Sequence record: MT679221.1
Direction: 5' to 3' (one strand)
Length of the DNA stretch: 64,000 nt
Shown: one piece after another, positions 1 to 20,859 of the stretch
How positions within the stretch are numbered: the first letter of the stretch is position 1
Layout of the letters: every line of letters begins with the position of its first letter
The notes under the pieces: model-generated
The model's database searches: none
Told to the model about the DNA's origin: nothing
What the model saw: only the letters and a program-made list of their open reading frames with translations
Made by a program: the position numbers and the translations under genes

Positions 1-93
1 ATAATACCTTTAGGTATTATATTTAATTATTATAATTATTTATATAAATAAATATATTAATATATTAAGATCTTAAAACGCGTGCGCACGCGT
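1..93. repeat. Chain of abutting palindromes, AT-rich then GC-rich (candidate origin or packaging element)
   Basis: ATAATACCT-tt-AGGTATTAT 1-20; TAATTAT-t-ATAATTA 24-38; TATTTATATAAATA 37-50; AATATATTAATATATT 51-66; TTAAGATCTTAA 65-76; ACGCGTGCGCACGCGT 78-93. The palindromes are read directly; the function is inferred. Confidence 0.85.
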
Positions 94-158
94 GCGTGAT
101 CCTTATTAAGAGATCGTGATCGGACGGAAGTCCGAGATTGGGTACCCTGTGTATTTTT

Positions 159-180
159 TACGTGGTTTCCCTATCGTGTG
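159..180 (+). promoter_or_regulatory. Putative nvRNAP (middle-type) promoter TAC-N15-TGTG
   Basis: Matches the YAC-N15-TRTR motif recurring in this window; resembles the phiKZ middle motif AAanntTAC plus the start-site TATG. Confidence 0.55.
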
Positions 181-388
181 TTCAGACCACCACTCGATGT
201 CAAAAACCCATAGCTTCGGTGGTCACCTCCCTGGTCGGTAGACTCTGACAAGTCGACCCACAACACCAACCCGTCCGGGGACGGATTTTTATTCCAACGA
301 CAAGCTCCACGAAAATCCCCGCAGAGGGACTCACTGCTGTGTGACTCACCGGCTCCTGGACGCCTACGCCTCGAGCCGGTAATTTTTT
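180..388 (+). ncRNA. Candidate small non-coding RNA
   Basis: No ORF. Promoter motif upstream. Hairpin CCGTC-CGGG-GACGG plus T tract at 271-290, and ACCGGCTC/GAGCCGGT plus T tract at 348-388. Confidence 0.35.
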
Positions 389-391
389 GAT

Positions 392-413
392 TACGTGAGT
401 TTGTTGTTATATG
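392..413 (+). promoter_or_regulatory. Putative nvRNAP promoter TAC-N15-TATG
   Basis: Exact motif spacing: TAC 392-394, TATG 410-413. Confidence 0.6.
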
Positions 414-990
414 CGAATAGCGATTGACCGCGCCAATGGTCCAATCACTTTTAAACCCTGCACGCTAGGGCTCCAAGTCCTGGGATTGTTACCCAGGACG
501 CTTTTTCGAAAATACCTACCGTGGTGTCTTCGACAAAGCGCAATCTAACACTGCGTGATTTATTATGTTCTGGAAAACTTTCGCCGTGGAACAGAACCGG
601 TGAGCGTCGGCGGGGATTCCGACAATCACCACCCATTCAGGTACTCGGTAAATAACCGACCTGCCGACGGTGCTACGTCGGGCGTAGTTCGGTTTGCGAG
701 AGTGTCGAGAAAGTCGACTGCGCACCCATGACAAAATCCGAGTTGACCGTGGCAGCGCCAGAGGACTGGGCAGCGGAGAGACGTCGTTGAACTTACCTCC
801 GATAGTTATCGCTGATTCCGCTCTGGCGTCGGGCCAAAACTGATTCGAATTCGGCGTTGCGTCGAAAAGGGGTCTGCGTGTAGAACCGCAGACTTGGGGG
901 ATAACTCCAAAGTGGGGTGATCGGATCTTGACGGCTCGGAACAGACGAGAGGGGTGGGTACTCCCGTTGAGAAACGACGGTACCTGGCTG
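413..990 (+). ncRNA. Candidate ~580-nt structured non-coding RNA
   Basis: Lies between two promoter motifs with no credible + strand ORF. Serial hairpins at 477-499, 567-597, 606-623, 850-866 and 872-893. Confidence 0.45.
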
Positions 991-999
991 ATTAAAATT

Positions 1000-1021
1000 T
1001 ACAGATTCTGCGTGAGGTATG
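1000..1021 (+). promoter_or_regulatory. Putative nvRNAP middle promoter (AAAATTTAC-N15-TATG)
   Basis: Full match to the phiKZ-type AAanntTAC with TATG 15 nt downstream; GGAG RBS of the next gene follows. Confidence 0.7.
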
Positions 1022-1045
1022 ATAAACCAAACGGAGAATTAAACC

Positions 1046-1621
1046 ATGAACTTGTATCGCATCGGGTTCTACCGAAACGAGATGCCTGAATCGGTTTTGG
1101 TTGTCTTAGCCGAAAACGAGGAGCAGGCCAAATCCTTCTGGCCGGTTAGCGCAGAGCGTCCAGCGATTGCGTGCTGCTACGACGGCGCTGTGTCTACCCC
1201 GATGGTTACGCCTGGGGTGGTTCTGAAGCAAGGCCGTTGGGATGATTATTCCCATCCCGGTTTGGAATTTGTTTCCGAATCCGCCAGACACACCTGGAAT
1301 CTTACCACGGGTAAAACCAGAGTGTACTTCGGCCACCAAGCCAAGCAACCGTCGCTCATCAAGCTGTACCTGGTTTACAGCGACGTCGCTACCGAAGACT
1401 ATGTCGACGCCGGAATCATCGTCGGGGCAACAACCCCCGAGGCGGCATTCGCACATTGGGACGGTGATAAACCCGGAATCGTTTCGGTCTGTGAGCTGCC
1501 ACTTGAAGCCGGTTTGGTTACGAACATCAAGTGTGAGCAAGGCCAGGAGCTGACTTGGATGCGCCAGGATTACCTGACGGAAACGACATTCGAGTACACA
1601 CCGAGGAAGGTGACCCAATGA
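1046..1621 (+). CDS. Hypothetical protein with two copies of a short phage domain
   Basis: 191 aa ORF with GGAG RBS. MNLYRIG..VVLAENEEQA and KLYLVY..IIVGATTPEAA resemble each other and the 2343-2585 protein. Confidence 0.8.
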   Translation: MNLYRIGFYRNEMPESVLVVLAENEEQAKSFWPVSAERPAIACCYDGAVSTPMVTPGVVLKQGRWDDYSHPGLEFVSESARHTWNLTTGKTRVYFGHQAKQPSLIKLYLVYSDVATEDYVDAGIIVGATTPEAAFAHWDGDKPGIVSVCELPLEAGLVTNIKCEQGQELTWMRQDYLTETTFEYTPRKVTQ

Positions 1622-2109
1622 CGACGATAGCGTTCGATGGAAAAGTCTTGGCTGCTGACGGCCAGCTGACCCGCGGGTCGAATATCTGCAACCTGAATAC
1701 CCAGAAGTTATTCATCTGCCCTTCTGACGAGGAGTGGTGGATTACTGGTGAACGGATTGTGGCGTTCGGAGTAAGCGGTGACATCACAGGACAGTTGGCC
1801 CTGCTGGAAACGGTCCGCTTGAGACCCGGCTACAAGGGATTAACACAAAGCTCGCAGTTACCTGCGAAGATGGATTTTACTTTCCTGATGCTTCTGGCCT
1901 CAGGGAAAGCGATAGTCGGTGGGAAGCGTGAAGACGACGTGTCGTTGTGGTGGAGTGAAGCCACACCACCTCTGGCAACCGGAAGTGGTTACGAGTATGC
2001 GTTGGGTGCGATGAAGATGGGCGCGAATGCGGTTCGTGCTGTTGAGATTGCGTCCGAATGCGATATCTACACCGGTGGTGAGATTAGCACTTACGAACTA
2101 CGGAGGTGA
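1618..2109 (+). CDS. HslV/proteasome-beta-like Ntn-hydrolase (threonine peptidase fold)
   Basis: Start reassigned to ATG 1618 (GAGGAAGG RBS, ATGA overlap). MTTIA..LAADG, a Lys about 30 residues in, ATGSG and DIYTGG match HslV catalytic motifs. Confidence 0.75.
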   Translation: MTTIAFDGKVLAADGQLTRGSNICNLNTQKLFICPSDEEWWITGERIVAFGVSGDITGQLALLETVRLRPGYKGLTQSSQLPAKMDFTFLMLLASGKAIVGGKREDDVSLWWSEATPPLATGSGYEYALGAMKMGANAVRAVEIASECDIYTGGEISTYELRR

Positions 2110-2112
2110 ATC

Positions 2113-2163
2113 ATGCGGGAGTCAGAAGCACGCAAGCTTGACCCCATCAATCGCCTGCGATAA
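2113..2163 (+). CDS. Possible 16-aa peptide MRESEARKLDPINRLR
   Basis: GGAGGT SD 5 nt before the ATG; too short for the ORF track. Confidence 0.3.
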   Translation: MRESEARKLDPINRLR

Positions 2164-2202
2164 CGGGGTAGCGCATCCGTATAAACACGTTTAAAGAATT
2201 CT

Positions 2203-2278
2203 GGGGGTATGGCGCAATTGGTAGCGCACCGGTCTCCAAAACCGAAGGTTCGAGGTTCGAAACCTCGTGCCCCCGCCA
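2203..2278 (+). tRNA. trnW: tRNA-Trp (CCA)
   Basis: 76-nt cloverleaf: GGGGGTA/TGCCCCC acceptor stem, CTCCAAA anticodon loop, TTCGAAA T loop, encoded CCA end. Confidence 0.95.
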
Positions 2279-2342
2279 CATTTAGCCAACGAATTCAGGT
2301 TCAACACAGAAGACACAGATTTGTCAACTGTTGGAGAACAAC

Positions 2343-2585
2343 ATGAATTTGTACTTGCTAGAACGAACTGACGATATCGGGTATGATGAATTTGATTCCA
2401 TAATCGTGGCGGCTCCTACGGAGCAAGCCGCGTGTGCAATTCCTCCCGACCGTGGTTATTGGATGGACTGCCGCTGGTTACCGAAAGAGCGCTGGGATGA
2501 AGGGCTTACCCTGACCGTTACTCTTATCGGCACTACGCACTATCCTGCTGGGACCGTCGTTCATGAATCGTTCAATGCTGGCTAA
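2343..2585 (+). CDS. Small hypothetical protein
   Basis: ATG 2343 with GGAGA RBS; MNLYLLERTDDIGYDEFDSIIVAAPTEQAA. Confidence 0.8.
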   Translation: MNLYLLERTDDIGYDEFDSIIVAAPTEQAACAIPPDRGYWMDCRWLPKERWDEGLTLTVTLIGTTHYPAGTVVHESFNAG

Positions 2586-2587
2586 AC

Positions 2588-2605
2588 AGTGGGCTTCGGC
2601 CCACT
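2588..2605 (+). terminator. UUCG hairpin after the first operon (no U tract)
   Basis: AGTGGGC-TTCG-GCCCACT. Confidence 0.5.
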
Positions 2606-2631
2606 AACCCTATTCGAGCCATGATACTTAC

Positions 2632-2992
2632 TCAGATTGTGCGGGTTGATGTCCCGCATGAGCCGGTAGCAGCTCAGACCTACGGTAAACCGATAAATCC
2701 GTAGCAGCCAGGTACACAAAGCACCAGGTCGCTTGTACAGGATGCTGGGTATCTGACCGGTCATAACCTCATTCGATACGAGACACGTTTATGCATGAAA
2801 TACTCCAGTACATCAGGATGTTGATTTCCAACGTCCGGTTCTGGGTATTCGGTCATGTTTGGTTTACAGGCGATGGGTTTTCCCGTAAGGGCCCCACTTA
2901 CAGACTGGCGTCTCCACGACAACCGTCCCTAGGGGACAGGCAAGCACCGGCCCATTAAGCCGCCATGCTACGCCTGTAAATCCACAATCTGA
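2632..2992 (+). ncRNA. Candidate multi-domain structured ncRNA (domain A)
   Basis: Closing helix TCAGATTGTG 2632-2641 / CACAATCTGA 2983-2992. Inner helix 2863-2872 / 2971-2980. Hairpins at 2680-2704, 2816-2836, 2882-2891 (GTAA loop) and 2925-2937. No ORF. Confidence 0.6.
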
Positions 2993-3250
2993 TAACCGAA
3001 TGGGATTGAGTTCCCAGTGTTAGGGTGACTGTGTGTCACCGTAGGCGCGGTACCTCATACGGCCGGTACGCCACGAATGTACGTGATAGCGGGTGGTGCT
3101 TGGAGACGCTAAGACCTGACCTTACGGCCAGGCTCAGAAGAAGAAGTCCATCGCCTGCATTCAGAAATGAATTTAGGTTAATTATCGGAAGCGGCGAAAT
3201 CGCTTACGTGATAACTTAGTAGTATGCAACGAACAATACCAGAGTGACTT

Positions 3251-3272
3251 TACGAGGTTACTGTGGTATATG
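3251..3272 (+). promoter_or_regulatory. Putative nvRNAP promoter TAC-N15-TATG inside the non-coding island
   Basis: TAC 3251-3253, TATG 3269-3272. Confidence 0.55.
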
Positions 3273-3620
3273 TCGGTGCGCCGGGCAACGTGTTGCCGCA
3301 GATAGGCCCGAGGGAGCTGAGTGCACTAACACACGCCGGGATGCACCGGCACCTTACAATGGGAGCGCTGTCACCATCAGTGATGACAGGAGTGAAGGAT
3401 TCGTACCTCACTCGACTGGGCGGAAGCCTGGGCGTTCCCCCATCTTCACATCATGGCCGGCTTGCCGGTTCAACGTAGACGTCTCGTAAGAGATTTCCAG
3501 TCAGGCAACTGATAACGCACCTAAGCGTCGACCTTGGACGTATGGTGTCTGGTTAAGTCCCCCGAAACGGAAACCAGTAGGGGTGTGGTACGTTGAGTGT
3601 AACTATCATGATGCCATGAA
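3272..3620 (+). ncRNA. Candidate structured ncRNA (domain B)
   Basis: Nested helices 3449-3455/3607-3613 and 3470-3477/3589-3596. GNRA-capped hairpins at 3419-3428 and 3481-3494. Further stems at 3284-3297, 3335-3350, 3390-3413 and 3549-3577. Confidence 0.55.
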
Positions 3621-3624
3621 CAAT

Positions 3625-3694
3625 GGCTTTGTAGCTCAGGTAGGTAGAGCAGCCTCATCGAGGAAGGTCGCCGGTTCGAGACCGGTCAAAGCAA
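3625..3694 (+). ncRNA. tRNA-like element with collapsed anticodon loop
   Basis: Acceptor GCTTTG/CAAAGC, D arm GCTC-AGGTAGGTA-GAGC, T arm GCCGG-TTCGAGA-CCGGT, variable loop AGGTC. Anticodon arm is CCTC-ATC-GAGG (3-nt loop). No CCA. Confidence 0.75.
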
Positions 3695-3770
3695 GAGCAG
3701 CGAAGTTAGAGGAATTAACACCCGACTCATAATCGGATATTTCGACGGTTCGAATCCGTCCGTTTGCTCG
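3695..3770 (+). tRNA. Atypical tRNA with CAT anticodon (elongator Met or Ile2; possibly pseudo-tRNA)
   Basis: CCGA-CTCATAA-TCGG anticodon arm, GACGG-TTCGAAT-CCGTC T arm, GTTA/TAAC D stem. Acceptor stem is 8 bp with a bulge; A in place of U8; no encoded CCA. Confidence 0.65.
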
Positions 3771-4149
3771 CCCTATTTGTGTTATCCTTATCCCGAAGGC
3801 ATTCGAAATAAGACGCGTATCCACACACGGGTCAAGGGTAACACGAACCACTTCCGCGGTCACCGTGTCCATTGCCGCCTACCTGCATGGGCTGTCCTCC
3901 GACACGGTGACTTCGGGCCAACTTACAGGCCAGGGCCGTTTGGGTTTTTCTTACGCATCCATCCAGAGCCACCTCGCGCCCTAGTCTGTATACCCCTTTT
4001 CTGTTCCTGGTTTGCCAACTAAATCAATTAAGCCTGGTGCGTTGCCCTGGGAACAGAAAAACTTATTCGGTTACACACCGAACCCACCCACGAGGGATAT
4101 GTCGTGGACTACCAATAGAAGCAGCAATAGTAGTAAGAAGGAAAGCAAC

Positions 4150-4971
4150 ATGTTTACAGTTAAACGTGTGATTGACGGTGACCGTATTATTACCGAACAT
4201 GAAAAAGTTCGTATCGGTGACCGTAAGTCTCGTGTATTCCGCGAGGCATTAAAAATGCTCGAGAACGAGCGCTTCGACATCGTTGTCGGTGATGAAAAAT
4301 TAGCCCTTAATCCGGGGTTAAAACGCGTTGCCCCTGATGTACCTGATCCGAACACCATGCATTTGTCTGATTATTGTAGCTGGCAGCAGCGCCTGTCTAC
4401 AAGTCAGCTTTATGCTCACGTATATCTAAGGCAGCTTTTCCCCAACCTTATTATCCCCGATTTGGAAACGGTCGAGGTGTTTAACTGCAACGCACGCGAG
4501 TTTGTTAGCTACGTGCTAGATAATAAGGGCAACGCTATCTTGGTACTGGCGACAAATTTATGTGAACCGGAAGCCATGGATAGTATCTGCGGCGAACTTG
4601 TTGGTTTCGGTACGCCCTTAGAAAAATTAGGTTGGTACAAGCCGTCTCCTGATAGCGACATGGCGATTATTGTCTACACTCAGGAAGAACTGCAACAAGT
4701 CGAATTAGAGCCTGGTCCATCTATCGAGTTCACTGATGTCCAGGAGCAATCGCAGTGGGTTAACGGTGAGTGCGTTGTTACTGTTTTAAAAGGCGCTCGC
4801 CCTGGCGACCGGTCAGTCGATGAACTGATTGGCGCAATGTGCATCGAAGAAGAATCTGGGTACGATCCTGATAACCAGATCAGTGCCGGTGCGTTGTACG
4901 AACTGTTTTATAAAGGCGACGAAGTCTACGTGGTTAACTCTCACGGTAAGACTACCGACGTCCTTCGCTGA
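4150..4971 (+). CDS. Hypothetical protein
   Basis: Start reassigned to ATG 4150 (AGAAGGAAAG RBS; MFTVKRVIDG..); 273 aa. Confidence 0.8.
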   Translation: MFTVKRVIDGDRIITEHEKVRIGDRKSRVFREALKMLENERFDIVVGDEKLALNPGLKRVAPDVPDPNTMHLSDYCSWQQRLSTSQLYAHVYLRQLFPNLIIPDLETVEVFNCNAREFVSYVLDNKGNAILVLATNLCEPEAMDSICGELVGFGTPLEKLGWYKPSPDSDMAIIVYTQEELQQVELEPGPSIEFTDVQEQSQWVNGECVVTVLKGARPGDRSVDELIGAMCIEEESGYDPDNQISAGALYELFYKGDEVYVVNSHGKTTDVLR

Positions 4972-5061
4972 ATTAGCTAACGCCCAGTAGCTATGTTCCT
5001 GACGATTAGCCCTCGTCTGACCTTGTAAGACCTTGTAGATTTACATGCCAACACCAGGGAA

Positions 5062-5103
5062 GTCCTCACTCTTCGGAGTGAGGACAACTCTTTTATTTTT
5101 TTT
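5062..5103 (+). terminator. Intrinsic terminator
   Basis: GTCCTCACTC-TTCG-GAGTGAGGAC followed by a T tract. Confidence 0.85.
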
Positions 5104-5120
5104 GTATTCCAAATATTTGC

Positions 5121-5140
5121 AGATAGATATTACCTAAGTG
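5121..5140 (+). promoter_or_regulatory. Putative early (virion RNAP) promoter
   Basis: AGATAGATATTACCTAAGTG; contains the phiKZ early-motif core TATTAC. Confidence 0.7.
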
Positions 5141-5194
5141 AGATGAGAAAGCCTCATCTGAATTCCCCCAACTCGACTATAAAAGGTAAGCATC

Positions 5195-6142
5195 ATGTAC
5201 AGACCAAGTAATCCTAGCGCTATTGAAGGATTAAACCAGGATGGCTTCAGCCTCGCAGAAGCAACCCGCATTCGACCTTTCTTACCTCGCAGATTCTTCC
5301 CTTTCGGTTCGTTATACAGAACGAACTTTGACGCTTGGGAAGCGATACGTGCTGTAAAAGATGCACTACAGTACAAGAACTTCGAATTCCGATTTGTGTT
5401 CAAATGGGGCAACGGCGAATTGCTCCACTACTTCGGATTCCAACAGAACGAGTTTATTGAGTATACCTCACCTACGTACCACACCAAGTTCCTAAGCATT
5501 GAGTTTGTTCGCCATTTCGGCGATGCACTCTTTACGGAACGGGCTACAGATGAAAACCATGGACGTAGACTGATGTTAACGAACGGTGCATTGCGCATCA
5601 AGATGAATCGTTTACGGGAAGCGTATAACCAGCTCATCAATCCTGAACCGGTAATGTTTCCAACGGTGGCAGATATGAATGTAACACCGCTTCAGCTACC
5701 TGTGGATATAGACAAACCAATTCTGGCAATCAGAGCACTGCAGGCAGGTTATGCAAACTGGTATAAAGGGCACAGTCTCCCGAACACCAGATTGAACATC
5801 GAACCGTATGAGTTGTGTTTATTCTTAACTCTACGCAAGCGGTTTGAGCCGAATAACTTAGACTTGCGTTATTTAGCGACTCCTGATGTTGGAACCTATT
5901 ATCCTGCGAATTGGATGGTTGCGGCAGTCCTACCGGACGGCGAGATGGTCGGTAGCATCGTTTATGGGACTCAACAATTACCTTCTCCGTTAGCACCACC
6001 GAAGGATTCTATATATCCGTACGCTTCCTGGTACGTTGGCAGTAACGGAGCTAGATGGTTGGTACTCCACGTCCCTGAGGAAGTTTATAATTTGTTTCCA
6101 CGTGAGCAATGGCTTAGCGTGTACGATTTTCAGTTTGGTTAG
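5195..6142 (+). CDS. Hypothetical protein
   Basis: 315 aa ORF with AAAGGT RBS, flanked by a promoter motif and a terminator. Confidence 0.85.
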   Translation: MYRPSNPSAIEGLNQDGFSLAEATRIRPFLPRRFFPFGSLYRTNFDAWEAIRAVKDALQYKNFEFRFVFKWGNGELLHYFGFQQNEFIEYTSPTYHTKFLSIEFVRHFGDALFTERATDENHGRRLMLTNGALRIKMNRLREAYNQLINPEPVMFPTVADMNVTPLQLPVDIDKPILAIRALQAGYANWYKGHSLPNTRLNIEPYELCLFLTLRKRFEPNNLDLRYLATPDVGTYYPANWMVAAVLPDGEMVGSIVYGTQQLPSPLAPPKDSIYPYASWYVGSNGARWLVLHVPEEVYNLFPREQWLSVYDFQFG

Positions 6143-6156
6143 TAGTCGATGCTTTT

Positions 6157-6191
6157 GAGGGAACTTCGGTTCCCTCTTTTTTTTCTTTTTT
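6157..6191 (+). terminator. Intrinsic terminator
   Basis: GAGGGAAC-TTCG-GTTCCCTC plus long T tract. Confidence 0.85.
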
Positions 6192-6227
6192 CACGACTGC
6201 CTCAGAATCTTATAGGAGGAAGTTACC

Positions 6228-6644
6228 ATGATTACGCAGTGCTATTACCAGACGCAAGATTTATTTAAAGCATTGGAAGAAAATAAGTTACCCACGACTT
6301 TAAGACCGCAGTGCAGTTATTCAAGAATGCTTGCAAGCGAGGTCTTTCCAGTGCTAATGCAGTTGCCCCAATTCCAGCCGTGGCTCGACTCGCTAGATGT
6401 GGTAGAGGTTGTGGCTATCTACACTGGGCCAGACACACCAACAATAAATACAAGCGAGTGTTTATCCCGTAGCGAATCTGCGGCGTTAAATGAAATGTCG
6501 CAACTAATGCCTTCTCTATTTGATTCGATGTGCGCTGCAGTTATGCAGAAACGACTACCTTATGAGGAAGTATTCGCCATTGTGTTAGACAGCATCCACG
6601 CAATGAATTATAAACACTATAAAACCCTCGGAACCTTACACTGA
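6228..6644 (+). CDS. Hypothetical protein
   Basis: 138 aa; AGGAGG RBS; CAC-N16-TATA motif at 6192-6214. Confidence 0.8.
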   Translation: MITQCYYQTQDLFKALEENKLPTTLRPQCSYSRMLASEVFPVLMQLPQFQPWLDSLDVVEVVAIYTGPDTPTINTSECLSRSESAALNEMSQLMPSLFDSMCAAVMQKRLPYEEVFAIVLDSIHAMNYKHYKTLGTLH

Positions 6645-6711
6645 CTTTTTTACGGCAGGCACCTATCTTGTAGGGAGTCTGTGCTGTAATAGATTCCAAA
6701 GGAGATGCTCG

Positions 6712-7101
6712 ATGAAAAACAAACTGCGTCCGCTGGACGTGATTATGGCGCATCCGGATACCCTCAAGAAAATTAAAGTGGTCAATGAACTTGACCGTGG
6801 TCTCCTGGATACTATTCAATGGGGTTTTACTTTCCACCCCGATGAAGAGAACAACACGCGTCAATTAGATGTTTGCGACGGCGTAGAAATCGATTGGTCT
6901 TCTAACGAAGGCTTCAACGATGTCGTCGATTATGTCAAACAAGCCACCGTTCCACCTGTGTTTCCCGTAGCTGGTTTAGCGGAGCACACAATTTCTCTCC
7001 GCCGACTGGTTAACGCTCAACCGGAGATTGTGCGTGAAGGTGAAGCGTGGACGTCAGGTATTACTCATCATCTTAAGGATGTGCTGGGTGTTGCCGGTTA
7101 A
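6712..7101 (+). CDS. Hypothetical protein
   Basis: 129 aa; AAGGAG RBS; TAC-N15-TGTA motif at 6651-6672. Confidence 0.8.
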   Translation: MKNKLRPLDVIMAHPDTLKKIKVVNELDRGLLDTIQWGFTFHPDEENNTRQLDVCDGVEIDWSSNEGFNDVVDYVKQATVPPVFPVAGLAEHTISLRRLVNAQPEIVREGEAWTSGITHHLKDVLGVAG

Positions 7102-7152
7102 AAAAAGAAGAAGTACCTCTACGCAAGTAGAGGTACGGAATCTTTCTTTTTT
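7100..7152. terminator. Bidirectional terminator between convergent genes
   Basis: A tract, GTACCTCTAC-GCAA-GTAGAGGTAC, T tract. Confidence 0.85.
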
Positions 7153-7153
7153 G

Positions 7154-7966
7154 TTACGACTTGAAGCGTCCACCGTTCATGTAATTCCAACGGTTTCCGA
7201 TGTTGTCGTTGTGGACCAGACAACGTTGCATTTTCGGCAAGGTGTCTTCGAACATTTGACCCGCGTCCGAGTAACCTTCAATAACGTTTCTGAAGGCACC
7301 GAACTCCATACCATTTTCCAGTTTACCGGAGTCCATGTCGAAGATCATGGTGTTGTAGATATATTGCTTAACAGCCATGACTGCCAGCTCACCTACAACC
7401 GGATAGAATGCTGGTTTTATTTCGTTCATCTCCTGGGATAGTTCGTACTTCACCACGAGTTTGGTAGAGTAAACGAACATGCCTGGGTCTTTGATACGGA
7501 TGGTATTCGGGCCGAGTACCTCAACCTCTGGAGAGGCGATACGCGGCATCGCCGACTGACTATCAACCACTTGTTGGGTGGATGCTAATACACCAGAGGT
7601 GGCACCGTCCAGATATGAACCTGCGGGAGGCATGGTGTACGCCTGTCCGGCAACGGGTGTTACAGAAATGTGGGCATCCAGAATAGGACGACCGCCTGTT
7701 TTGATGTCGTCGAGATAATACACGCGACTGAAATAATCTTGCGTGTCGTTATCCCAAGGGACACCTTGCAAATCTACTTCTTGATACTGCCCCATTCTGG
7801 AGATTTCAGGGACCAGAATCTCACGAATAACACGTTGTTGGATTTCGTTATCTACAGAGCTTGCAATTCCCAGTAACTTGAGGTTTTCTGGAACAAAAGC
7901 CGCCTGTAGAATCGGGGCAGGAATATGCTGTCTGATTTTACGCAGACAGTAGTCGATAACATTCAT
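7154..7966 (-). CDS. Conserved phage protein, probable virion structural protein
   Basis: Start reassigned to MNVIDY (AGGAG RBS); 270 aa. Structural role inferred from synteny with SPN3US gp8 as recalled. Confidence 0.7.
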   Translation of the reverse strand: MNVIDYCLRKIRQHIPAPILQAAFVPENLKLLGIASSVDNEIQQRVIREILVPEISRMGQYQEVDLQGVPWDNDTQDYFSRVYYLDDIKTGGRPILDAHISVTPVAGQAYTMPPAGSYLDGATSGVLASTQQVVDSQSAMPRIASPEVEVLGPNTIRIKDPGMFVYSTKLVVKYELSQEMNEIKPAFYPVVGELAVMAVKQYIYNTMIFDMDSGKLENGMEFGAFRNVIEGYSDAGQMFEDTLPKMQRCLVHNDNIGNRWNYMNGGRFKS

Positions 7967-8039
7967 TCTAAGGCTCCTATGAAGCTCGTAGGACAACTCA
8001 TACCATCGGGTAATGCTATCCCATTACCTGACATTAAAA

Positions 8040-19455: not shown

Positions 19456-20859
19456 AAAAGTGTTATTCTGCTATTCCTTATTCTTAGTCGGTGACTGGTA
19501 ATAGGGAATAAATTGTGATTATTGAAAAGTTGAGTAGGAAACTACGCGATGATTTAGAGCCCTCGTATGTTTTTAAGGGGTATTACAGACACCCAGTCTA
19601 TCGTGATCTCTTTGTTGATGCATTGGGTGACTGTAAAGTAAAAGGTATGGTCATGCCGCTACCGGTCTTCATTCTCAAAAGTGGATACCTGGGAGTGCGC
19701 GGTTGTAAAGGCGAAACCCATTTACATCGAATTGTTGCGACTGTGTTCCTGGATAAATGTGGTGACGAGGTTAACCATCGTGATGGTGTTAAGAGTAATC
19801 CATCTGTGGTAAACCTTGAGTGGTGTTATCGAAAGGAAAATGTTAATCATGCTTTCGATACTGGTCTAAGAACTGACAACATTATTGTCGATGTCAGAAA
19901 TCTCGAGACCGGCGATATAGTTCAGTTCCGTAGCATGACTAAGGCGGCTGAGTATATCGGCGTTAATCGGCACTTGGTTTCAAGCTCGATCGCGCGTGGG
20001 CTTAATCGTCAATACACGCTAAATGATGTGTTTGAAGTCAAGGTACCGGAAGACGACTGGATTCTCACCAAGAATTCTATTGGTAAGAACTCAGGACCAG
20101 GTAATAAAGGACTGGTCATCAGAAAAGTTGGTAAGGAACCATATTTCCTGTTCTCGTCTGTACCGGCAGCAGCCGAATACGTGGGTATAAAACCACACCT
20201 CATCTATTCCCATCTCAACGGCGGTTCCGTCGATTTGACTAAGTTTGGATATGAGGCGTGGTACATGGTGGATATCGATGTTGCCATAACTGACATGATC
20301 GATCTCCGCAAACCCAGACCACAATCACAAATGCCAAAACGTGTACCGTCGATGGTGCGTGTGACTGATACGACCACTAACATCAAAACCATTTGGAATT
20401 CTTTACAAGAGTTTTCAAACGCGATTGGTGTGAAAAGAAACACTGTGGCCAAAGCAGTCTCACAAACCGGAAAGTACAAACAATTTGAAGTTCAATATTT
20501 AACAGCAGAATAGCCTTGCCCCATCAGACGGGAAACCTCTGATGTGTATCTCCCTGAATTGCTGGGAACCCCTAAAGCTCATTTGCCCATGTGGAGACGA
20601 AAGTCGGAAACAAGTAATGAGATGACCTATGCTAAACAATACTGCTAAGGGTTTTAACAATGGGTAATCAGCAGCGAAGCCTCGTAAGAGGAACGTTCAA
20701 CGACCGGAGCTGAAATGCTCGTAGGTGCTTAGAATAGCACCGAAGTGGGGAGGAGCCTAAAAGCGAAAGCTCATGGCTAAGGTATGGTCTGTGCCCTAAT
20801 GAAAGTTAGGGAGGGTGTTACTACACACCTGCTCCAAAAGGATTGGAGTGGACAAACAG
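19456..20859 (+). mobile_element. Group I self-splicing intron (1404 nt) with HNH homing endonuclease
   Basis: P AATTGCTGGGAA 20557-68, Q AATCAGCAGC 20666-75, R GTTCAACGACCGGA 20695-708, S AAGGTATGGTCT 20779-90. P2 20522-44; P9 20794-811. 5' exon ends in U and intron ends in G. Splicing restores NGDFDGD in frame. Confidence 0.92.
19515..20513 (+). CDS. Intron-encoded HNH homing endonuclease with three NUMOD1-like DNA-binding repeats
   Basis: HRIVATVF..VNHRDGVKSNPSVVNLEWCYRKEN HNH motif. Repeats FRSMTKAAEYIGV, FSSVPAAAEYVGI and WNSLQEFSNAIGV. GTG start. Confidence 0.9.
   Translation: MIIEKLSRKLRDDLEPSYVFKGYYRHPVYRDLFVDALGDCKVKGMVMPLPVFILKSGYLGVRGCKGETHLHRIVATVFLDKCGDEVNHRDGVKSNPSVVNLEWCYRKENVNHAFDTGLRTDNIIVDVRNLETGDIVQFRSMTKAAEYIGVNRHLVSSSIARGLNRQYTLNDVFEVKVPEDDWILTKNSIGKNSGPGNKGLVIRKVGKEPYFLFSSVPAAAEYVGIKPHLIYSHLNGGSVDLTKFGYEAWYMVDIDVAITDMIDLRKPRPQSQMPKRVPSMVRVTDTTTNIKTIWNSLQEFSNAIGVKRNTVAKAVSQTGKYKQFEVQYLTAE

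Follow-up and report, generated by a model that had tools for sequence, protein, structure and literature searches.

What function can a tRNA-shaped gene serve when its anticodon arm is only a stub? The question is raised by positions 3625-3694 (+ strand) of Proteus phage 7 (MT679221.1), a phage of the species Seoulvirus SPN3US, genus Seoulvirus within the Chimalliviridae, the family of nucleus-forming jumbo phages. We analysed a stretch of 64,000 nucleotides from this record (the window), of which positions 3300-4100 gave a 100% BLAST match to the record at identical coordinates. The tRNA-Trp gene (2203-2278) and a gene at 4150-4971 bound a region of about 2 kb in which hardly any coding genes are annotated, and the element lies within it. 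A sequence-only reading of this DNA had described an RNA in which the elbow and acceptor are kept while decoding is impossible, and had offered four functions for it: a decoy for anticodon nucleases, a Y-RNA/YrlA-like mimic, a processing signal or a decaying pseudogene. Pfam and PHROGs searches of the ORFs neighbouring the element were uninformative. Elsewhere in the window, the gene immediately upstream of tRNA-Trp (1618-2109) matches a PHROG annotated as an HslV-family peptidase, and positions 20483-20811 match the Rfam group I intron model with 51.9 bits, the gathering score being 50.

The structure that had been read from the letters, with a D arm, a T arm, a 6-bp acceptor, a stub, a G1·A72 mismatch and no CCA, was borne out by the sequence, by the Rfam tRNA model and by the minimum free energy fold. 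The 5′ strand of the acceptor, GGCTTTG (3625-3631), begins with an invariant G1 that stands unpaired opposite A72, and is followed by TA and by a D arm (GCTC, AGGTAGGTA, GAGC; 3634-3650) that appears in both the Rfam alignment and the fold. After the bases A and G comes the anticodon-arm stub (3653-3663), in which CCTC (3653-3656) and GAGG (3660-3663) enclose the triloop ATC (3657-3659). The variable region AAGGTC (3664-3669), as placed by alignment to the Rfam model, leads into the T arm (GCCGG, TTCGAGA, CCGGT; 3670-3686). Within the T arm, GGTTCGAGACC (3673-3683) agrees with the GGTTCRANYCC motif of the plant mitochondrial t-elements, and the motif positions are invariant. The 3′ strand of the acceptor (3687-3694) consists of CAAAGC, the mismatched A72 and the discriminator A73. 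No CCA follows A73, the next base being G3695, the start of the next tRNA-like gene. CCA is encoded in the tRNA-Trp of the window and in the six canonical tRNAs of phage SPAsTU that were read (six of seven, tRNA-Trp being the one left out).

The Rfam tRNA model (RF00005) matched the element end to end over model positions 1-71; the score of 34.3 bits exceeds the gathering score of 29, and the E-value over the 64-kb window is 0.0021. The alignment placed 3 nt where a 7-nt anticodon loop is expected and flagged the 1:72 pair as non-standard. Thus two features of the family are missing, namely a 5-bp stem bearing a 7-nt loop with U33 and an anticodon that can be read, and a paired 1:72 in a 7-bp acceptor, of which the remaining six pairs are intact. 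The minimum free energy fold is the same cloverleaf with the 4-bp/3-nt stub, and its folding-energy z-score of −1.8 is weak evidence when taken alone. The element resembles canonical tRNA, the phages' own tRNA-Ile(GAU) most closely, in the order of the cloverleaf, the D arm, the T arm with T54-T55-C56-A58 and the variable region, but differs in having a stub instead of a 5-bp/7-nt anticodon arm, in G1·A72 and in the lack of an encoded CCA. Positions 3625-3694 are a conserved gene for an RNA with the top half and elbow of a tRNA and a stub for an anticodon arm, and because the arm is only a stub this RNA is unable to decode.

Comparison with the homologues described below revealed how freely this arm varies. 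Its length lies between 11 and about 50 nt, its loop has 3-7 nt, and none of the homologues has a canonical 7-nt anticodon loop containing U33. The sequence-only reading had suggested checking whether the triloop is conserved, and it is not: ATC is private to Proteus phage 7, close relatives having TTC (most) or TTT, and RNA-seq contigs of a close relative carry T at 3657. The SPAsTU arm is extended to about 50 nt and capped by a GAAA tetraloop, those of pSal-SNUABM-04 and of an uncultivated genome (L011) are 17 nt long and closed to 4-5-nt loops, and those in the other genera are hairpins of 16-18 nt with loops of 3-7 nt. In Machina and pEa_SNUABM_6 a poorly paired arm is accompanied by an extra 24-nt hairpin. 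A second version, type B, is a compact cloverleaf of 65-67 nt found in Caitlin, phiEaH2/Stratton, pEa_29, pEa_4, pEa_9 and ChrisDB, in which a CCCGG-UCGGU-CYGGG hairpin substitutes for the D arm and a UCGUC...GACGA hairpin carries loops of 3-7 nt. The nearest approach to a normal anticodon loop is UUAAUUA in Machina. We also considered the long SPAsTU arm as an intron and rejected this explanation; it is too short for a group I intron, forms a continuous extension of the stub helix and, when removed, yields no anticodon loop. Taken across the homologues, the comparison shows the anticodon arm to be an unconstrained stub.

These observations bear on the GenBank record, which annotates 3624-3694 as tRNA-Asp, most likely because the ATC triloop was read as an anticodon. 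That the gene is a working tRNA-Asp(AUC) is hardly credible. A 3-nt loop on a 4-bp stem leaves no U33, no position 37 and no 7-nt loop, the supposed anticodon is a different triplet in near-identical relatives, and ARAGORN made no tRNA call at 3625-3694 when run on the window. The labels given to orthologues by gene finders and records disagree as well, and include Asp, OTHER, Pro(cgg), Ile(aat) and ???(ga); ARAGORN labels the pSal-SNUABM-04 orthologue Pro because its arm can formally open to CCCGGCG. The G1·A72 mismatch would also be expected to disfavour use of the RNA in elongation.

We identified 20 distinct homologues in three genera, all of which occupy the same place, immediately 5′ of a non-canonical tRNA(CAU). 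Among phage records, about 40-53 from Seoulvirus, Machinavirus and Erskinevirus contain the pair, as do three metagenome contigs and one uncultivated viral genome (L011); such recurrence at one and the same position is far beyond chance. When IMG/VR and metagenomes were scanned with two DNA patterns and a neighbouring protein, nothing beyond SPN3US-like, Machina-like and Erskine-like genomes was returned, and within these collections the family looks confined to this group. BLAST of the 70-nt element found no match in E. coli genomes, and among phages outside the family it found only a generic D-arm and T-arm likeness to Met, Thr, Gly, Lys and Arg tRNAs. With a covariance model built from the element family, the best outsiders were the phages' own tRNA-Ile(GAT) genes at 37-42 bits, other tRNAs scoring at most 35. 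Descent from a tRNA-Ile-like gene is thus weakly suggested, and since the BLAST likeness was generic, the isotype of origin depends only on the modest preference of this model. Our literature search found no description of the element.

The surroundings of the pair differ greatly among the phages that carry it. In SPAsTU, pSal-SNUABM-04 and Machina it is surrounded by 5-10 canonical tRNAs. The SPN3US clade has lost the tRNAs for Tyr, Glu, Asp, Ile and Gln, and mostly that for Asn, which SPAsTU and the Machinavirus phages retain; the clade kept the pair although nearly all canonical tRNAs are gone. SPN3US itself has lost 264 bp between two ACAATGG repeats, and this deletion stops exactly at the leader of the element. 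The repeats correspond to window positions 3356 and 3620, and the deletion removed from SPN3US a second conserved, cloverleaf-like RNA that lies at 3356-3441 in the window (GGGAGCG...CGTTCCC) and has the same ACAAT leader. This RNA has a four-way junction, a third arm capped by GGAA and no T loop; its identity to the SPAsTU copy is 95%, one arm is compensated relative to SPAsTU and pEa_SNUABM_29, and no Rfam family matches it.

Further tRNA-like sequences were noted in other phages. Stratton and Asesino contain a 120-nt RNA annotated as 'tRNA-Ile(aat)' (L021:514-633 and L022:550-670), whose acceptor is perfect (AGTCGCC/GGTGACT) and which has D and T arms as well as a central arm of about 66 nt; it lies just upstream of the type B element in Stratton and directly precedes tRNA(CAU) in Asesino. 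In Machinavirus, the DNA upstream of the element (L004:2420-2500, L007:2370-2447 and L017:650-727) closes with a T-arm-like GTGGTTCAACTCCAC and then GGRAAYCACCA, which resembles the 3′ end of a tRNA with CCA encoded and was called by no gene finder. Its counterpart in the window, at about 3580-3617, looks decayed.

As a measure of the constraint on the upper half of the element, 19 distinct homologues were aligned and the six acceptor pairs (2-7 with 66-71) and five T-stem pairs were scored. All 209 of the 209 cells over these 11 pairs were paired, and compensatory changes on both sides occurred at nine pairs, comprising all six acceptor pairs and the three outer pairs of the T stem. The covariation score was 0.693 compared with 0.29 in shuffles, and none of 500 shuffles reached it; because the roughly 20 sampled sequences are phylogenetically related, this control overstates significance, and the more reliable measures are the number of pairs with double changes and a control with slid partners, in which pairing fell to 25-49%. 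The 20th variant, L011, contributes an A7-T66 pair. We found that G1, A72, A73 and the G after A73 are invariant in 19 of 19 homologues, as are G52, G53, T54, T55, C56, A58, C61 and C62 of the T arm. One G of the D loop (3643) is also unchanged in all 19, which is consistent with a preserved elbow between the D and T loops. When the window is compared with SPAsTU, the element outside its arm has an identity of about 97% and the neighbouring gene one of about 82%, while most of the spacer defies alignment. In the SPN3US clade, the sites of the element that vary lie in loops or amount to a G-C to G·U change. This pattern shows what selection maintains, namely the acceptor helix (6 bp plus the invariant G1·A72 and A73), the T arm and the contacts between the D and T loops. 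The central claim of the sequence-only reading, that elbow and acceptor were kept in an RNA that cannot decode, thus holds in three phage genera with strong covariation, and we consider it very probable that 3625-3694 is a selected, non-decoding tRNA-like RNA.

The same data bear on two explanations in which the element has no function as an RNA. One is that it is a defunct tRNA gene left to drift while the tRNA array around it shrinks, an idea suggested by the many canonical tRNAs that the SPN3US clade has shed, by the DNA just upstream (about 3442-3617), which resembles decayed array sequence, and by an Rfam score of 34 bits that is low beside the 45-76 bits of canonical neighbours. A relic of this kind would not be expected to keep fully paired stems and compensated pairs in three genera, an identity above that of the flanking gene, an invariant junction and a nearly invariant leader, or to confine its substitutions inside the clade as it does. 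This explanation is largely refuted by the covariation, and we regard it as improbable; neither relatives with a normal 7-nt loop nor random decay of this copy, which together would have spoken against the sequence-only reading, was found. The other explanation attributes the conservation to a protein gene on the minus strand (ORF 3636-3872), to which SPN3US-like records give the label 'hypothetical protein' (e.g., SPN3US_0003) and which is open for 78 aa in the window and in SPN3US. The ORF overlaps two Rfam tRNA matches, its longest stop-free stretch is only 58 aa in MET_P1 (about 97% identical), the stop-free stretch lies in a different reading frame in SPAsTU and other genera, and the substitutions are compensatory for RNA stems. 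It is very unlikely that such a gene accounts for the signal, and the 78-aa ORF is probably an annotation artefact.

We then examined the sequences that flank the element. The 5′ leader ACAAT (3620-3624, + strand) is nearly invariant in the 19 aligned homologues; alignment columns A4, A6 and A7 are invariant, C5 is conserved in at least 90%, and the base at −1 is T in 14 of 19. The leader of L011, the 20th homologue, is ATTAA. Leaders of the ACAAT type are shared with other non-canonical elements, whereas the canonical tRNAs of the array have U-rich leaders. Over the entire window, the sequence ACAATGG shows no enrichment, with 10 occurrences where 8.8 are expected. At the other end, the junction C71-A72-A73|G(−1) is invariant and contains no spacer, such that A73 (3694) abuts G3695 in all homologues.

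The partner across this junction, a non-canonical tRNA(CAU) at 3695-3769 (+ strand), matches the Rfam tRNA model with 30.6 bits and has its anticodon CAT at 3728-3730. Its acceptor helix of 8 bp starts from G−1:C73, a pair present in every homologue; the helix has no unpaired position in 7 of the 11 sequences checked and contains a 1×2 internal loop in the Seoulvirus copies. Position 8 is A or C rather than U, and CCA is not encoded. The anticodon arm, which is similar to the one in E. coli tRNA-Ile2, hardly varies, and covariation is seen in the acceptor and T stems. In pEa_4, pEa_6, pEa_9 and ChrisDB this tRNA has a long variable arm of about 28 nt; L004:2584-2660 and L025:833-933 are examples of its homologues. 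The tRNA may carry Met, Ile via lysidine, or another amino acid. AUA use in the long ORFs of the window is unremarkable (5 per 1000 codons), and there is thus no strong argument from codon demand for this tRNA.

Evidence for transcription came from RNA-seq data, in the form of assembled contigs, for a closely related phage. In two transcriptomic runs a contig spanning 3253-5053 included the two tRNA-like genes together with the gene downstream of them; its depths were 1562 and 435, compared with 18,000-60,000 for the gene at 5195-6142. The libraries are dominated by RNA, given the large contrasts in depth, and it is likely that the element is transcribed within a longer RNA. DNA carry-over or read-through could also have produced the contig, because the contigs are strandless and the low depth is similar to that of neighbouring spacer contigs; libraries of this type under-represent small RNAs. 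A scan for sigma-70 promoters and terminators gave nothing useful on the + strand near the element. SPN3US-like phages are transcribed by RNA polymerases of their own.

RNase P and the CCA-adding enzyme recognise the acceptor/T-arm helix and the elbow, and a U at −1 is also among the parts read. The selected half of the element, together with its fusion to a second tRNA-shaped unit, therefore suggested a role in processing. A review of RNase P that covers the substrate recognition of the enzyme describes the dimeric tRNA precursors of phage T4, which have spacers of less than 5 nt and no encoded CCA and are matured by host RNase P with a yield that depends on the structure of each half (PMC11143913). 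Positions 3625-3694 and 3695-3769 share with such precursors (e.g., tRNAPro-tRNASer) the head-to-tail order of two tRNA-shaped units less than 5 nt apart and the absence of an encoded CCA. The difference is that both halves decode in T4, whereas here the upstream unit is unable to decode and the downstream unit is itself non-canonical. The t-elements of plant mitochondria offer a second parallel; these are non-canonical cloverleaves with the GGTTCRANYCC T arm that act as cleavage signals for RNase P and RNase Z, and some of them gain a non-templated C or CCA (PMC1920247). They show that a cloverleaf may degenerate and yet, if its T arm is intact, be retained solely as a signal for these enzymes, although t-elements flank organelle mRNAs and the present element is fused to a tRNA in a phage tRNA array.

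In the model that we propose, the element and tRNA(CAU) would be transcribed as part of the transcript of the tRNA island and matured like a T4 dimeric precursor. Host RNase P would cut 5′ of G3625, after the conserved ACAAU leader, and a second RNase P cut at the 5′ end of tRNA(CAU) would simultaneously create the 3′ end of the element; since there is no spacer, this cut would leave the element ending precisely at A73 as a substrate for CCA addition. Because selection falls on the top half of one member of a fused, CCA-less pair, the feature most likely selected would be a module that folds correctly, is competent for RNase P and so ensures that the adjoining tRNA(CAU) is matured, and the predicted RNA of about 70 nt thereby released may additionally act in trans. 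Among the four functions offered by the sequence-only reading, a processing signal would best fit the invariant junction. We somewhat favour the overall view that Seoulvirus, Machinavirus and Erskinevirus have kept a functional, non-decoding RNA derived from a tRNA as the 5′ half of a T4-style dimer, where it would aid maturation of tRNA(CAU). Taken as a specific assignment, action in cis as a maturation module is the most likely function, although we make this assignment only tentatively. RNase P in principle needs no folded upstream unit to cut a tRNA, and in Asesino a different tRNA-like RNA, with a long arm, stands 9 nt ahead of tRNA(CAU). Such a module does not specifically require the invariance of the G1·A72 mismatch and of the elbow, which may point to another partner. 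Moreover, the partner tRNA(CAU) of this clade has an imperfect acceptor stem and its own function is uncertain, and the strandless, low-depth contigs showed no ends of a mature small RNA.

An alternative is that the RNA acts in trans, its elbow and acceptor titrating or recruiting a tRNA-binding protein while the lower half is disposable. The candidate targets are a host defence or toxin that reads the acceptor and elbow, an enzyme of tRNA processing or modification (such as RNase P or the CCA enzyme) and a phage factor. This possibility, which we consider rather unlikely, draws on the invariance of the elbow and of the G1·A72/A73 end beyond the apparent needs of simple excision, on retention of the element where most canonical tRNAs were lost, and on a very plastic bottom half that has three architectures under one top half. 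The variable stub might then serve to keep the RNA off the decoding pathway, but a lack of constraint would explain its variability equally well. No partner was found among the neighbouring genes, in which Pfam and PHROGs reveal no informative domains, and accumulation of a stable small RNA is a prediction only. The specific proposal of a decoy for PrrC-type or PARIS-type nucleases gained no support; a triloop stub that varies even between close relatives offers no anticodon loop to cut and cannot imitate the loop that these enzymes cleave, making such a decoy unlikely. A module of the YrlA or Y-RNA type that tethers the Rsr (Ro60) protein would likewise combine tRNA-like D and T arms with an inability to decode, as the effector domain of YrlA does, and would mimic the elbow. 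In YrlA, though, the strand order is permuted and the acceptor closed, whereas the element has the normal order of a tRNA and free acceptor ends. The Rfam YrlA model (RF02553) had no match in window positions 1-8000 at E ≤ 10, its weak matches in relatives reached at most 27.6 bits against a gathering score of 69 and were located on other tRNAs, and we found neither a Ro-binding helix in the element nor a TROVE/Rsr Pfam domain in seven neighbouring ORFs. That the element belongs to this class is accordingly very improbable, and this part of the sequence-only reading did not stand.

Two other tRNA-like RNAs were compared with the element. The mascRNA and MEN-beta RNAs are excised by RNase P and extended by the CCA enzyme. 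A 5′ GG and a weakened acceptor end have been reported as triggers of CCACCA tagging (PMC4307339), and the element starts with GG and has a mismatch at 1:72. This is a resemblance only; the system is eukaryotic, and no Rfam mascRNA match falls on the element. The tRNA-like domain of tmRNA also keeps the acceptor and T arm without an anticodon. We rejected tmRNA as an identification; ARAGORN made no tmRNA call, 3:70 is C-G rather than G3·U70, and the element has no mRNA-like part or pseudoknots.

Phage tRNA genes have usually been discussed only as decoders or as substitutes for cleaved host tRNAs. Here, three genera of jumbo phages have kept a tRNA that does not decode, and have done so more faithfully than most of their real tRNAs. 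The only half that was preserved is the half read by tRNA-processing enzymes. The annotation can be corrected accordingly, as orthologues of this one element have been recorded variously as tRNA-Asp, Pro, Ile(aat) with an "intron" or OTHER, and also as a hypothetical protein encoded by the other strand. The element provides a natural test case for what a lone acceptor, T-arm and elbow module does in infected cells, either in co-maturation of a fused tRNA or in mimicry in trans. If the trans reading were true, the SPN3US-like, nucleus-forming jumbo phages would carry a dedicated tRNA-mimic RNA, beyond a processing module that acts in cis.
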